Sequence record: MT612988.1
Strand: one strand, 5' to 3'
DNA: 64,000 nucleotides
In this document: positions 9,743-43,283 of the stretch, piece after piece
Layout: every line of letters starts with the position of its first letter
Position numbering within the stretch: the first letter of the stretch is position 1
Position numbers and translations under genes: made by a program
Notes under the pieces: model-generated
What the model was told of the DNA's origin: nothing
Database searches by the model: none
Seen by the model: the letters and a program-made list of their open reading frames with translations, nothing else

Positions 9743-11425
9743 TTATACTTTTAGTACAAATGATTCATGGTCGATAGTAACATTAGCCGCTGTACTAGCC
9801 AATACTCGAATCTCACTCAAGTCATCTAGATTCGCAACGTTAGTGATTGTAACTGGAGTAACTTGGTTTGCACGAAGCGTACGTGTTTTCTCGATTGATG
9901 AGCTTGTGCCGTTATCATGATCGAAATCAATTCGAATCGTGATTGTAGTGTTTACTGGTGAAACAACAACCCAATGAATAGACATCGTTTTGCTCAATGA
10001 TAGACCGTTACGTGTCAATACACCACCTGCATACGTGTAACCACTCACATCTGTCTCAAGATTAAATAAACTGAATACATCTGTAGGTGTAGTTGTCAAA
10101 TCAACTGTACTCGGAGTATCAGAAGACAATAATGCATGATCCAACTGTGCTTCAAGTTCCAGAACACGAGCACGCAATGTACCCACTTCGCTATCACTCT
10201 GACCAACTACAGCCAATAGACCGTCAACGTCTGCCTGAGCAGATTCAACTAAGCCACGGTTTTCTTGAATCGTGTACCATGCAGTGAATTCAACAGGGTT
10301 TGTACGCTCACCTAGACTAGACTCAAGCTGTGACACTCTGTAAGACACTGTGCCAGTTTCTGCGTCAGTAGCCCCTAAACGACCCCACAAGCTATTGATA
10401 TCGTCGTTAAACGTCGATAGACGAGCTTTCATGCTACCCGAGTACACGTCATCTACTGCGTATGAACCGATATCAGTTGACATTTCAATAAATAAATTAG
10501 TAACGGAGCCAATTTGTGACTGATTATCTGCAATTGTAACTTCATTCGCGCTAACGCGATCAAGTAGACCTGTAGTCGGCGTTTCAACTTCCTGTTGTAA
10601 TAATGCAATATCTGATGCGTTGTCTGAAATAGAACTTTCAGCATCATCAAGACGAAGATACACTGGACGACCAGAGTCAGCATCTGCCGTTTCACCTAGT
10701 TCATCACGAATCTGATCAACAGAACCAACTTGCGAGTTTTGTTCTAGTTCGTATAAACGACCGTTGATTGAAAGCGGGATTGCGTTCTCGCCGATTTCAG
10801 CGTTGATCGTAGCTGTTTTGTTGTACAGGTCTTCGATCTGATATTTCATACCAGTCGGGTTTGTACTAGGAGATGGGTTGCCGTTGACATCGTAGTTACG
10901 GTCATTACCAATACGACGCTTGATGAAATATAGATCTTTACGAACTGTATCGTTGTTTTCAACTTCGTTTGGAATATCTAGGCTGTTACGAACACCAATA
11001 TCTGCTTCAACATCTTCGATGCCTTTATGCAGACCTGTTGCAAGTACGTCAACGCTACTCGGTACACCGATGTCATCAATGACGTTAGTCATTTGACCTT
11101 CAAGTACATCAATATCAAACTCGTTTTGTGACACACGAGAACCTAAGTTAGCGTCACCGCCACCTGTCAGTTCGTTAACAGTATCAACAAGTTCTTCAAT
11201 TGCGCTTTGCTGTGCTTTTGTGTTGTAATGAGAGTTTAGAACGTTTTCTTGAATCTGTACTCCTGCGCGGTTTAATACACCGTCTGAAGTCGTGTCACCA
11301 GAAGCACCGTTGATGCTTTCACCGTTCTTAGCCCAATTGATTCGAGTCTGATCGGGACGTTGAGAAGGATCTGGTTGACCATTTACATATCTAAGCTCTT
11401 CAATGATAGGCTTTTGAATTGTCAT
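9743..11425 (-). CDS. wac: fibritin (whisker/collar fibre)
   Basis: LRYVNGQP..Q.RINWAKNGE...GVLNRAGVQIQEN N-terminus, then segmented coiled coil. Start taken at MTIQKP (11425), which follows an AGGG RBS. Confidence 0.88.
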   Translation of the reverse strand: MTIQKPIIEELRYVNGQPDPSQRPDQTRINWAKNGESINGASGDTTSDGVLNRAGVQIQENVLNSHYNTKAQQSAIEELVDTVNELTGGGDANLGSRVSQNEFDIDVLEGQMTNVIDDIGVPSSVDVLATGLHKGIEDVEADIGVRNSLDIPNEVENNDTVRKDLYFIKRRIGNDRNYDVNGNPSPSTNPTGMKYQIEDLYNKTATINAEIGENAIPLSINGRLYELEQNSQVGSVDQIRDELGETADADSGRPVYLRLDDAESSISDNASDIALLQQEVETPTTGLLDRVSANEVTIADNQSQIGSVTNLFIEMSTDIGSYAVDDVYSGSMKARLSTFNDDINSLWGRLGATDAETGTVSYRVSQLESSLGERTNPVEFTAWYTIQENRGLVESAQADVDGLLAVVGQSDSEVGTLRARVLELEAQLDHALLSSDTPSTVDLTTTPTDVFSLFNLETDVSGYTYAGGVLTRNGLSLSKTMSIHWVVVSPVNTTITIRIDFDHDNGTSSSIEKTRTLRANQVTPVTITNVANLDDLSEIRVLASTAANVTIDHESFVLKV

Positions 11426-39295: not shown

Positions 39296-39324
39296 GTTGA
39301 CTTATTCTGAAAAGCATGTAGAAT
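39296..39324 (+). promoter_or_regulatory. T4-type early promoter P1 of the tRNA island
   Basis: A-tract, GTTGAC-17 nt-TAGAAT. Confidence 0.8.
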
Positions 39325-39388
39325 GTATTTCATCGAGTCGAGAGACAGAACACAAACTTTCAACTCGATGAAATATTTGAAAAAAGTT

Positions 39389-39417
39389 GTTGACTTACAC
39401 TGAAATGATGTTAAGAT
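39389..39417 (+). promoter_or_regulatory. T4-type early promoter P2 of the tRNA island
   Basis: A-tract, GTTGAC-17 nt-TAAGAT with TGn extension. Confidence 0.8.
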
Positions 39418-39425
39418 TAACACAG

Positions 39426-39534
39426 TTGATTAAGCGAGCTAAGTTCATCGTTCTCGCCTCTTATTGAAGATGAACAATATTGATTAAGCAGACTAAACTC
39501 ATCGTTTCTGCCTCTTCTCTGAAGATGAGTAATA
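39426..39534 (+). ncRNA. two tandem 54/55-nt repeats, each an H-type pseudoknot
   Basis: S1 GCGAG/CTCGC vs GCAGA/TCTGC; S2 GTTCATC/GATGAAC vs ACTCATC/GATGAGT; five compensated pairs. Confidence 0.8.
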
Positions 39535-39613
39535 TTTTAAATGTGCGTTAGCCGCAATGAATACATGGAGCCAGTATACGTTCTGGCGTGCAAGTAGCGC
39601 ACATTTAAAATAT
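39532..39613 (+). ncRNA. long-stem RNA with a CCGCAA variant of the helix-CWGCAA module
   Basis: 16-bp perfect IR (39532-47/39598-613) extended inward; CCGCAA at 39552. Confidence 0.5.
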
Positions 39614-39628
39614 CGAGAGTACATTGGT

Positions 39629-39751
39629 CGAGTGTTGGTGTAGTGGCAGCACACGTAGCATACTGTAATCAGACATGATTATATTCAGCAACCAATTTAC
39701 GCATATCATAGGGAGATCGTGGGAACGGTTCGATTCCGTTACACTCGACCA
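39629..39751 (+). ncRNA. tRNA-Pro(AGG)-like RNA with a 49-nt insertion between positions 28 and 29
   Basis: Acceptor CGAGTGT/ACACTCG+ACCA, D arm, CG|ATC-ATAGGGA-GATCG anticodon arm, T arm. The insert 39656-39704 holds a hairpin plus CAGCAA. Confidence 0.8.
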
Positions 39752-39784
39752 ATGTACTCTCACTAACAAAGCGAGGTGGACAAT

Positions 39785-39940
39785 TTGATTGTATATCTTC
39801 TCGCACTAGTATTCATCGTCCTCTTTGCCTTGGACATTGAAGAAGAAAAGGTGCGCATTCATACTTTTGCGCTAATCACATGCGAACGGGTCATTCATCC
39901 CGTAATTAAAGCGCACGATTCCAGATTGTGTTTTGATTAG
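39785..39940 (+). CDS. small membrane protein (TTG start)
   Basis: GAGGTGG RBS; N-terminal hydrophobic helix LIVYLLALVFIVLFAL; 51 aa. Confidence 0.5.
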   Translation: MIVYLLALVFIVLFALDIEEEKVRIHTFALITCERVIHPVIKAHDSRLCFD

Positions 39941-40010
39941 CTAAGGCAAATATAACTAGAGGATTTTTGGTGCTTGTGGTTAATCACAAGCACTCTCAAG
40001 AACATATTGA

Positions 40011-40132
40011 GCAGGGTTGGTGTAGTGGCTAGCACACGTAGCATAAACGCAAGCTGTTAAGTTTGTATTCTGCAATCAATTTAGCATATCATTTCCAAGA
40101 TCGTGACGCAGGTTCGAATCCTGCACCCTGCT
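40011..40132 (+). ncRNA. tRNA-Gly(TCC)-like RNA with a 49-nt insertion between positions 28 and 29
   Basis: GCAGGGT/ACCCTGC with U73; 8-nt loop ATTTCCAA; insert 40039-40087 holds a hairpin plus CTGCAA; no encoded CCA. Confidence 0.8.
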
Positions 40133-40150
40133 CAATATGTTTTTACATTG

Positions 40151-40264
40151 GTGAAGTTAGTTCAGTTGGTTAGAATGCCGGCCAAAAAAAACGAAGTCTG
40201 ATAAGATTTCATTCTGCATTCACATGCACGCCGGAGGTCGCAGGTTCGAGTCCTGCACTTCACC
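40151..40264 (+). ncRNA. tRNA-Asp-like body with ~43 nt inserted in the anticodon loop
   Basis: GTGAAGT/ACTTCAC, Asp-type D arm, CCGGC/GCCGG stem, T arm; insert has GAAGTC-TGATAA-GATTTC hairpin plus CTGCAT. Confidence 0.75.
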
Positions 40265-40274
40265 TTCAAATTCT

Positions 40275-40399
40275 GGAGAGTTAGCTCAGTCTGGTAGAGC
40301 AAAAGAATGTTAAAGAATACTGACAAGCATTCATGCTGCAAACCTTAATAACTAGGTAAATCTTTTTGTCACGCGGTTCAAATCCCGTACTCTCCACCA
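40275..40399 (+). ncRNA. tRNA-like RNA with an expanded anticodon loop
   Basis: GGAGAGT/ACTCTCC+ACCA, D arm, AAAGA/TCTTT stem enclosing GAATAC-TGACAA-GCATTC plus CTGCAA. Confidence 0.75.
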
Positions 40400-40413
40400 A
40401 TTTTCGAGGGTTT

Positions 40414-40782
40414 ATGAATAAGTTTAATGACATAAATGACGAACTTGATTGTATATTGCATCGTTGTGAGATTGTAAAGCGCAATCTTCGAAAATATTGT
40501 ACATTTGCTGTTGAAATGCAGTATAGACTTATGATAAACTTCATTGGCATGGGTTGCTATCAACAAGTTCTGCCGATATTAGACAATCTAAATTATCACC
40601 CTGATACAAGTCAGTTTGATAATATTGAGATTATGCAAACTATAAAAGAATTGATGAAATGTGCAGATAAGCTCGATTTGCTGCATCAACAAGACGCATT
40701 TCATCAAATTAAATCGACTGCTCGTATTACAGAAGAAGCAAACATCTTCGCTGCGAAAGTTGGTCGATTTCTAGAGAAATGA
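40414..40782 (+). CDS. hypothetical protein
   Basis: GAGGG RBS before ATG 40414; the track start overlaps a tRNA-like RNA. Confidence 0.7.
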   Translation: MNKFNDINDELDCILHRCEIVKRNLRKYCTFAVEMQYRLMINFIGMGCYQQVLPILDNLNYHPDTSQFDNIEIMQTIKELMKCADKLDLLHQQDAFHQIKSTARITEEANIFAAKVGRFLEK

Positions 40783-40783
40783 T

Positions 40784-40861
40784 GGCCCTATAGCTCAACA
40801 CGGTTAGAGCAACCGACTCATAATCGGTAGGTTACAGGTTCGAGTCCTGTTGGGGTCACCA
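40784..40861 (+). tRNA. tRNA-CAT (Ile2/lysidine type most likely)
   Basis: Cloverleaf, loop CTCATAA, GGCCC acceptor, CCA. Confidence 0.9.
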
Positions 40862-40881
40862 AAATAAATTGAAAAAAGTTG

Positions 40882-40910
40882 TTGACAGACGTTTCATCAA
40901 CGTGTAGTAT
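40882..40910 (+). promoter_or_regulatory. early/sigma70 promoter
   Basis: TTGACA-17 nt-TAGTAT. Confidence 0.8.
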
Positions 40911-40940
40911 ACACATTATCAACTACACGAGGAAAACATT

Positions 40941-41171
40941 ATGTCACATAAATTGCTAGTTATCACATCAATGCACGGTTGCTACGTCGATTACGATTTC
41001 AGAACTGAAATGTTTGACAGATACATGTGTGATGTTGTGATTCCGAACGACTCTGTTGTTTTGTACTCGGGTACAGTTTCAATAGATGAAATTCAAGCAG
41101 TTGCGAACGAATGTTACGCTGACATCAAGATTGAAGAAGTCAGTGATGATGTTTTTGACAGCTATCTTTAA
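40941..41171 (+). CDS. hypothetical acidic protein
   Basis: GAGG RBS, downstream of a promoter. Confidence 0.75.
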   Translation: MSHKLLVITSMHGCYVDYDFRTEMFDRYMCDVVIPNDSVVLYSGTVSIDEIQAVANECYADIKIEEVSDDVFDSYL

Positions 41172-41428: not shown

Positions 41429-41950
41429 ATGAAACCATTGAAGTTCGTTGAAGCGTTCTCTAAAGAAGAACGTGCTGCTATGACGATTGAAGAACGTAGC
41501 AGACTTCGTAAAATATATAACGAACGCTATCAAGAGTATGTTGATAAGTACATCAATGTATTCACTCGAAAAGACTTTCGAAGAGAGCGTTGCTGGGTTA
41601 TTCTTGCACGATGTAAAAAGACTGGTGAAATCATCGGTCGAATTGAAAATAGTTTTAGTATGGGATGGTCTAAAGAGCGTGTTCGTGTTATTCGACCGTA
41701 TCTAAACGGTAATTTCACGGGCGATGACCGCTTCTCTAAAGCTGAGTACAACAAAGCGTGTGCTGAGTACATAACTCATCATGAGAAACAAGTAAAGTCT
41801 CTCAGAGAAGCTTACAAAGACACTCACGACGTTTTCTTATCTCGTGTGGGTAGTAAGAACTGTCCTGTTTCTATTGATTGGGATACGTATTACAGTAAAA
41901 AAGACAAACGAAACTTTGAATATCGAAATTTGAAATTCAAAGTTAAATAA
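41429..41950 (+). CDS. hypothetical basic protein
   Basis: GAGG RBS before ATG 41429. Confidence 0.75.
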   Translation: MKPLKFVEAFSKEERAAMTIEERSRLRKIYNERYQEYVDKYINVFTRKDFRRERCWVILARCKKTGEIIGRIENSFSMGWSKERVRVIRPYLNGNFTGDDRFSKAEYNKACAEYITHHEKQVKSLREAYKDTHDVFLSRVGSKNCPVSIDWDTYYSKKDKRNFEYRNLKFKVK

Positions 41951-42334: not shown

Positions 42335-42604
42335 TAAAATCGCAGAAAATTGAAAAAAATTATCAATTTTCTGCGAAAATACCGCAAATCGTCAGATTTA
42401 GTGTTATAAGTACTATAAAGAAACAAAACAAATTTTAATTTTTATTTCAAGAGAGCATTCAATGACGCATTCGTTTACACATTCATCTGAGACATTACGC
42501 AGCGATTTTTTGCGCTCAGAATTCGTGTATCTAGCGAATCCGATTGCGAACCAGAAGTGGGATACCCTCTTGTAGTCCGATAGTATAACATAGAAGTATA
42601 CTTG

Positions 42605-43150: not shown

Positions 43151-43283
43151 TTCAAAAAGATGTTTACAACGATATAAACATCGTGTACAATGAAGAAAAG
43201 CGAAACATCATTCAAAATCGAATGAAAAGTTTTTCAAAAAAGATGTTTACAACGATAAAAACATCATGTACAATGAAGAAAAG
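43151..43283 (+). promoter_or_regulatory. duplicated early promoters (two ~50-bp direct repeats)
   Basis: TTTACA-17 nt-TACAAT at 43163-43191 and 43246-43274. Confidence 0.85.

Follow-up and report, generated by a model that had tools for sequence, protein, structure and literature searches.

Two tandem units of 54 and 55 nt, located on the + strand just behind an early promoter of a KVP40-like Vibrio phage, are each an H-type pseudoknot whose fold is proven by compensating mutations. The motif is new relative to Rfam 15, is found at no other place in the phage genome, exposes a set of invariant unpaired bases, and is linked to tRNA-type transcription units in two unrelated phage lineages. With a probability of about 40%, the units are a small stable RNA, cut from an early precursor, that recognises a protein and acts via its invariant single-stranded face. 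Large T4-type phages have tRNA clusters with odd stable RNAs, of which the non-tRNA members have no assigned function. The present motif is one that is supported by covariation, absent from Rfam, and better conserved between unrelated phages than the neighbouring tRNA; judged from its placement right after an early promoter, it would be made first in infection.

Setting and anatomy of the two units

The window, that is the whole stretch of 64,000 nucleotides analysed (record MT612988.1), derives from a KVP40-like Vibrio myovirus (Straboviridae, Schizotequatrovirus). Its segment 39200-39900 is 100% identical to phage vB_ValM_R10Z in one piece and 100% identical to R11Z in two pieces, and the region is present in 50 phage records, at 80-100% identity. 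Genes 1 (dNMP kinase) and 57B lie upstream of the pseudoknot region; downstream come odd tRNA-like RNAs, then 28 tRNA genes. The features around the units are the following.

39297..39324, + strand: early promoter P1 (TTGACT, 16 nt, TAGAAT), 10/12 matches, 93 nt upstream of P2
39326..39375, + strand: hairpin of 19 bp with which the P1 transcript begins (inverted repeat I4, 89% complementary), kept in relatives
39390..39417, + strand: early promoter P2 (TTGACT, 16 nt, TG-TAAGAT), conserved in all aligned relatives
39426..39479, + strand: pseudoknot unit 1 (direct repeat, descriptor, covariation)
39480..39536, + strand: pseudoknot unit 2 (direct repeat, descriptor, covariation, covariance model R1 at 86.8 bits)
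39532..39613, + strand: 19-bp stem closing a variable RNA module, directly 3' of unit 2 (inverted repeat I3; fold)
39615..39761, + strand: tRNA-like RNA that has a D-arm, a T-arm and a terminal stem of 21 bp (inverted repeat I1, 100% complementary; fold z-score -7.15)

P1 belongs to a 35-nt duplication shared with P2 (repeat family D2). The P2 -10 box, TAAGAT, occupies 39412-39417, and unit 1 starts 9 nt downstream, at 39426. Both units are built in the same order: a tail (UUGAUUAA), S1 (5 bp), L1 (CUAA), S2 (7 bp), L2 (GUU), S1', L3 (11-12 nt) and S2'. Their parts are positioned as follows.

Unit 1: tail UUGAUUAA, 39426-39433; S1 GCGAG/CUCGC, 39434-39438 with 39453-39457; L1 39439-39442; S2 GUUCAUC/GAUGAAC, 39443-39449 with 39469-39475; L2 GUU, 39450-39452; L3 CUCUUAUUGAA, 39458-39468; linker AAUA
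Unit 2: tail UUGAUUAA, 39480-39487; S1 GCAGA/UCUGC, 39488-39492 with 39507-39511; L1 39493-39496; S2 ACUCAUC/GAUGAGU, 39497-39503 with 39524-39530; L2 39504-39506; L3 CUCUUCUCUGAA, 39512-39523; then AAUAUU

The hexamer AAUAUU stands directly 3' of both units. The two form a direct repeat with 54-nt spacing and 76% identity. Three stem pairs in S1 and two in S2 are not the same in both copies, and 5/5 of these differences are compensated. Both helices are stable by themselves, with energies of -4.9 (S1) and -7.7 kcal/mol (S2) in unit 1, and of -4.3 and -7.9 kcal/mol in unit 2. An earlier note on this DNA had described two direct repeats of 54/55 nt about 9 nt past the P2 -10 box, each made of S1 (5 bp), CTAA, S2 (7 bp), GTT and a long L3, with full compensation of the five stem differences, an AATATT junction after each copy and an early promoter just 5'. 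All of this is borne out, the promoter being the sigma-70-type P2 (TTGACT-16-TAAGAT).

The units are followed by an untranslated cluster, in the order 19-bp-stem module, two tRNA-like RNAs of 147 nt, two tRNA-like RNAs with anticodon-loop insertions, a 122-aa ORF, and tRNA-Met. The stem at 39532..39613 would be processed by RNase III. Compared with other records (L001, L004), the module that it closes is a short variant, a much longer insert being present in KVP40, phi-Grn1 and others; in phi-Grn1 this longer insert is annotated as an extra tRNA-OTHER. The two 147-nt RNAs (39615-39761 and 39998-40144; fold z-scores -7.15 and -5.29) have a D-arm, a T-arm and perfect 20-21-bp terminal stems, with a region of about 65 nt replacing the anticodon arm, and neither ARAGORN nor Rfam calls them as tRNA. 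The next two (40151-40264 and 40275-40396) are Rfam tRNA matches of 53.6 and 50.1 bits, with anticodon-loop insertions of 46 and 49 nt. The KVP40 annotation names their counterparts tRNA-Pseudo-5 and -4, that of phi-Grn1 lists them as intron-bearing tRNAs, and a weak Y-RNA-like (YrlA) match of 32 bits overlaps them; they may be unexplained small stable RNAs of T4-type tRNA clusters.

The 122-aa ORF (40414-40782), which lies within the RNA cluster, is found only in KVP40-like phages (phrog_27428). It is predicted to be an all-helical five-helix bundle (pLDDT 92.8), and has no significant Pfam, PADLOC or PDB fold match; as a toxin or partner of the units it was therefore rejected. More generally, the ORFs near the units have no significant match in Pfam or PADLOC, in agreement with the earlier remark that no toxin gene is adjacent. 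The annotation of R11Z (L262, L264, L265) contains a complete preQ1 pathway, QueC, QueF, FolE, a QueD-like protein and QueE. A CCA-adding enzyme, two RNA ligases and a polynucleotide kinase are also annotated there, and together with the preQ1 genes they constitute a toolkit by which the phage could make, modify and repair its own tRNAs. Literature searches found no transcriptome of any KVP40-like phage.

No terminator-like site was found on the + strand between 39400 and 41000; the next + strand candidates are at 41848 (weak) and at 42604, which is the next strong one. Tandem duplicated promoter pairs, about 83-93 nt apart, precede stable-RNA units at 39297-39417 and 43163-43274 of the window, and at 10500-10800 of a marine contig (L148). 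The other tRNA transcription units of the window have promoters of their own, and covariance model R1 detects no pseudoknot in them; the unit behind the tandem promoters at 43163 and 43246 is one example.

The arrangement of tandem promoters, structured leader and long untranslated stable-RNA unit, with long stems around the mature RNAs, resembles that of an rrn operon, and tandemly duplicated promoters occur likewise in the marine contig. The units do lie in the promoter-proximal leader of an untranslated stable-RNA operon, and a role in cis would also be compatible with their position, which in both lineages is near the promoter and 5' of tRNA-type genes. They could accordingly be read as a cis-acting leader similar to that of rrn operons, which recruits a host Nus/BoxA-like factor to the polymerase or guides processing. 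YUCUU is present in the S1'-L3 segment of every unit, and copy 2 of F86 and of D480 reads UGCUCUUUA, which is the rrn boxA 9-mer (PMC2724277). This string lies in their S1'-L3 segment (L002 1778-1841, L025 1588-1651), where other units have one extra C. Copy 2 of K566 matches positions 1-8 of the gamma-proteobacterial consensus GYTCTTTAANA (PMC5725501), and these three copies are the only ones matched at boxA positions 1-8.

However, the extra C breaks the boxA match in the window and in most relatives. The units of the window agree with GYTCTTTAANA (PMC5725501) at only 6-7/10 positions in ungapped comparison, a chance level, and the best scores against this 11-nt consensus, 6-8/10, are reached about half the time by random 64-mers of the same composition. 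The consensus is not enriched in the window either (17 matches versus 12 expected, none of them in the leader), and half of the box-like segment is paired in S1. The boxA reading was rejected, as it stays at chance level in most units against the published consensus strings. Given also that other tRNA units of the phage, such as that of the 43163/43246 promoters, lack the element, we regard a cis-acting leader as unlikely.

Covariation and invariant unpaired bases

The homologous region was taken from 12 relatives, and the single units of phage 1.081.O and of the marine contig were added, which gave 17 distinct units (alignment A3). Every stem position is paired (201/201), and two-sided changes are seen at 7 of the 12 pairs, 4/5 in S1 and 3/7 in S2. 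New pair types appear per lineage, for example GCGAA/UUCGC, ACAGA/UCUGU, GCACA/UGUGC, UCUUAUC/GAUAAGA and GAUUAUC/GAUAAUC. None of 500 shuffles reached the observed covariation score or the observed percentage of paired positions, and when the 3' partners were slid by 1-3 columns as a control, pairing fell to 25-56%. A sequence-free pseudoknot descriptor gave 15 and 6 matches on the two strands of the window, and 4-21 per strand in shuffles. Because descriptor matches are this common by chance, a single pseudoknot proves nothing; the significance comes from the tandem, in-register arrangement together with the covariation.

The + strand is the functional one, as deduced from the orientation of the promoters and from phage 1.081.O, in which one S1 pair is G-U, where the opposite strand would have a C-A mismatch. 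A coding role of the units was rejected, since the small ORFs are unconserved and indels shift every frame across the units. An apparent degenerate third copy around 39800-39850 was discarded as well, its local alignment score (22) being below the background maxima (25-27). No further copy was detected by covariance model R1 when it was run over the window and over the full R11Z genome (247 kb).

In the 17 units, some 24 unpaired positions never vary. They comprise the tail (U)UGAUUAA (UUGAUUAA in the window), L1 CUAR, L2 GUU and, in L3, CUCUU-N2-3-UGAA, and the inner five S2 pairs are also among the conserved positions of alignment A3. L3 is pyrimidine-rich, the CUCUU-N2-3-UGAA pattern being found in 17/17 units. 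The tail is quasi-palindromic, and the palindrome is broken in F86 and in nt-1. Invariant loops of this kind could equally serve as a ligand pocket or as a catalytic core.

Searches of Rfam 15 with 3 kb and with 131 nt, which included the ToxI, riboswitch and ribozyme models, returned no match on the units at E values up to 10. Small ribozymes occur in phage tRNA clusters, and the size of the units, their pseudoknot, their invariant core and their proximity to tRNAs are reminiscent of them; a new self-cleaving ribozyme would cut at the unit junctions. No Rfam ribozyme model matches, however, and there is no room for extra HDV-like helices, because only 3 nt separate S2 from S1'. The CU-rich L3 (CCUCUU...) is complementary to purine-rich ribosome-binding sites, as would befit a regulatory RNA acting by base pairing, but no conserved complementary target is found nearby; nor is any conserved complement to the tail or to L3 present in the nearby sequence. 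A base-pairing or self-cleaving RNA is the least probable of the explanations considered here.

Distribution and the marine element

Both units are present in 49 phage records, and a single one in phage 1.081.O. The motif is fixed in the related phages (50/50), the hosts of which are several Vibrio species. Pattern scans of IMG/VR detected, among the matches listed and besides chance matches, KVP40 and VH7D only. A scan of a genome collection gave at least 120 matches, of which, among those listed, one was a true match after a stem-complementarity filter. This match (L130; GenBank PBMB01000011.1) is a 75-kb contig binned as a Chloroflexota MAG, and a specific metagenome scan yielded two Tara contigs that carry the same element. 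BLAST of the units against 72,556 plasmids found no match, and neither did BLAST against E. coli genomes.

Despite its Chloroflexota MAG label, the 75-kb contig is probably a phage-like element that was wrongly binned, because its GC content is about 30% and because the marine contigs (L130, L147, L148) have AT-rich sigma-70-like promoters and almost no annotatable proteins. The ORFs of L148 have no significant PHROG or Pfam match, and the L130 locus that overlaps it contains only DUF4942 and Metallophos. No protein similarity was found between the marine element and the window, and their GC contents differ (30% versus 42%). Apart from a few marginal short matches, the DNA that they share amounts to the pseudoknot (81% identity over 47 nt) and tRNA-Asn (73.5%), the pseudoknot being more alike between the two lineages than the tRNA (81% versus 73.5%).

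The marine unit is single, as is that of 1.081.O; these two are the single-copy lineages. Of the two tandemly duplicated promoters upstream of the marine unit, the second is about 150 nt away; a stem-enclosed RNA module precedes the unit, and tRNA-Asn follows it at a distance of 9 nt. The setting of the motif is, in every case, an untranslated early transcription unit of tRNAs or tRNA-like RNAs.

The earlier note had proposed, as an alternative, that the units form an exonuclease-blocking cap for the tRNA operon. A passive 5' structure that stabilises the transcript, by blocking an exonuclease or RNase E, would accord with the start of the units some 3-10 nt from the predicted P2 start, and P1 transcripts also begin with a hairpin. 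This proposal fared poorly. The unit is internal in the marine contig, processing stems (in the marine contig, the tRNA 5' end) separate the downstream RNAs from the units, and other tRNA units have no pseudoknot. A cap, moreover, needs neither 24 invariant unpaired bases nor 81% identity between unrelated phages, so that the conserved loops would be superfluous; we consider it very unlikely.

Equally improbable, in our estimate, are tandem small-molecule aptamers that would form a new riboswitch-like class. Pseudoknot riboswitches are typically small H-type folds in which the stems covary and the loops do not change; they stand directly 3' of a promoter, in some cases as tandem copies, and the units share this usual look. 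A 7-deazapurine could be the ligand, because the phage makes preQ1 according to its annotated pathway (QueC, QueF, FolE, QueD, QueE), and the marine unit precedes tRNA-Asn, a tRNA of the queuosine family. However, no Rfam riboswitch model matches the 131-nt segment at E values up to 10. An expression platform is absent too: neither unit is followed by a terminator, a ribosome-binding site or a conserved ORF, and in the marine contig a tRNA is found 9 nt downstream of the unit.

Candidate function and comparison with known systems

A small stable RNA with a conserved partner fits these data best, because of the invariant face, the uniqueness of the motif in the genome, its predicted early expression and its placement among stable RNAs. 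On this reading, both units encode a new, conserved RNA with an H-type pseudoknot fold; the tandem early promoters would drive them on the + strand, at the head of a stable-RNA (tRNA-like) transcription unit that is not translated. Cleavage of the precursor by host RNases, in the single-stranded, AU-rich junctions and in the long stems on either side, would free large amounts of pseudoknot RNA, about 55 nt in size (about 115 nt for a dimer), during the opening minutes of infection. That the RNA is released as a separate molecule is suggested by the AU-rich junctions and the long stems, and we infer protein binding as well. The freed RNAs would act in trans, the tail UUGAUUAA, CUAR, GUU and CUCUU..UGAA binding a putative conserved protein, for which the RNA would be a sponge or decoy. 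The most concrete candidate partner is a TenpN-like type III toxin, another being a conserved host RNA-handling protein. More tentatively, the motif could be the founding member of a new class of marine-phage pseudoknot RNAs: an aptamer (e.g. for 7-deazapurines), a catalytic RNA for maturation of the tRNA cluster, or a genus-wide decoy for a TenpN-like toxin.

Mimicry of a type III antitoxin would be a specific sub-case of the protein-recognising stable RNA, and its most concrete version. Produced as infection begins, an orphan TenpI-like mimic would engage a host endoribonuclease of the TenpN/ToxN type as the host antitoxin decays. In its favour, TenpI repeats measure 39-57 nt and occur in 1.9-3.0 copies (PMC3401426, Table 2), ranges that include two copies of 54/55 nt; for type III antitoxins as a whole, tandem repeats of 31-62 nt in about 1.9-5.6 copies are the rule, and the units conform to it. 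They conform also to the rule of one H-type pseudoknot per repeat with single-stranded tails, as seen from the covariation in both helices and from the conservation of the unpaired tail and linker. TenpI repeats may differ by up to 35% (PMC12283969) and may be two non-identical pseudoknots whose single-stranded tails bind the toxin, and a functional TenpI of this two-repeat, non-identical type with single-stranded tails is documented (PMC13682666). Furthermore, tenpIN loci are listed for Vibrionales and Alteromonadales (PMC3401426), strong early promoters drive the units, an orphan mimic would be expected to lack an adjacent toxin gene and terminator, as is the case here, and pseudo-ToxI of phage PhiTE provides a precedent for a decoy (PMC3475682).

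Against it, CUCUU..UGAA stands in the place of the A-rich long loop that is the hallmark of CptI and TenpI; neither such a loop, with its A-minor contacts, nor the triplex core of ToxI is found. L1 is longer (4 nt against 1 nt), and the stems are separated by 3 nt. No Rho-independent terminator follows the repeats directly 3' (+ strand, 39400-41000), and the nearby ORFs include no downstream endoribonuclease toxin gene in the operon. There is no Rfam match, ToxI included, and neither plasmids nor E. coli genomes, which carry tenpIN, contain similar DNA; the true matches of the genome and metagenome scans, among the matches listed, are phage-like contigs only. Pseudo-ToxI matches its cognate at most positions, whereas no such cognate of the units was found in a comparison that covered Rfam 15, plasmids and E. 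coli genomes. In 1.081.O and in the marine contig, the motif is present in single copy. Finally, it is fixed in 50/50 relatives, while type III loci have a patchy distribution and rapidly diverging antitoxins (PMC12283969). This fixation, and the near-constancy of the motif in an unrelated marine element, where it adjoins a tRNA, would suit a core function better than a response to a toxin of patchy occurrence.

In the likeness to type III antitoxins that the earlier note had drawn, the geometry (unit length, copy number, non-identical pseudoknot repeats) was upheld, whereas the loop, L1 and the terminator were not, and no bacterial sequence relative was detected in Rfam 15, plasmids or E. coli genomes; we judge the mimic rather unlikely. 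Should the protein-recognising RNA nevertheless be a type III toxin decoy, it would provide the first example of an RNA anti-defence element naturally fixed throughout a phage genus, and antitoxin-like RNAs would gain in structural range. If a host core factor or a metabolite were bound instead, phages would possess a new way to control the expression of stable RNAs.

Compared with TenpI, the units are alike in being about two tandem H-type pseudoknots of about 50-55 nt, possibly non-identical, with covarying stems and tails, located 3' of a promoter (PMC3401426; PMC12283969; PMC13682666). Unlike TenpI, they have neither terminator nor toxin gene, their loop is pyrimidine-rich rather than A-rich, and L1 has 4 nt versus 1. 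They also differ in sitting in a cluster of tRNA-like RNAs of a lytic phage, in being single-copy in two lineages, and in having no detected bacterial sequence relative. Pseudo-ToxI of the Pectobacterium phage PhiTE resembles them as a set of phage-encoded non-coding repeats that could mimic an antitoxin pseudoknot (PMC3475682). Its repeats, however, are 36 nt long, match ToxI at most positions, vary in copy number under selection and lie between protein genes, whereas the present units have no known cognate, keep a stable copy number and are fixed across the phage group.

With the aptamers of the preQ1 class, the units share a compact promoter-near H-type pseudoknot with invariant loops, sometimes in tandem, and the phage encodes the preQ1 pathway; they differ in lacking a covariance-model match and an expression platform, in loop lengths and composition, and in being followed by stable RNAs, not by a regulated ORF. 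The operator of T4 gene 32, too, consists of a T4-type phage pseudoknot with AU-rich single-stranded sequence on its 3' side (PMC3014915), but the units are not upstream of gene 32 and control no translation start. A gene 32 operator reading was rejected, since the gene of the ssDNA-binding protein is annotated elsewhere and R1 finds no copy there. As for the leader of rRNA operons (boxB-boxA-boxC) and the lambda nut sites, the window misses the consensus, the match is at chance level, the segment is partly paired and other tRNA units have no such element; what the units have in common with these leaders is the tandem promoters, the structured leader, the untranslated stable RNAs, the YUCUU core and the rrn boxA 9-mer, which two relatives contain without mismatch in copy 2.
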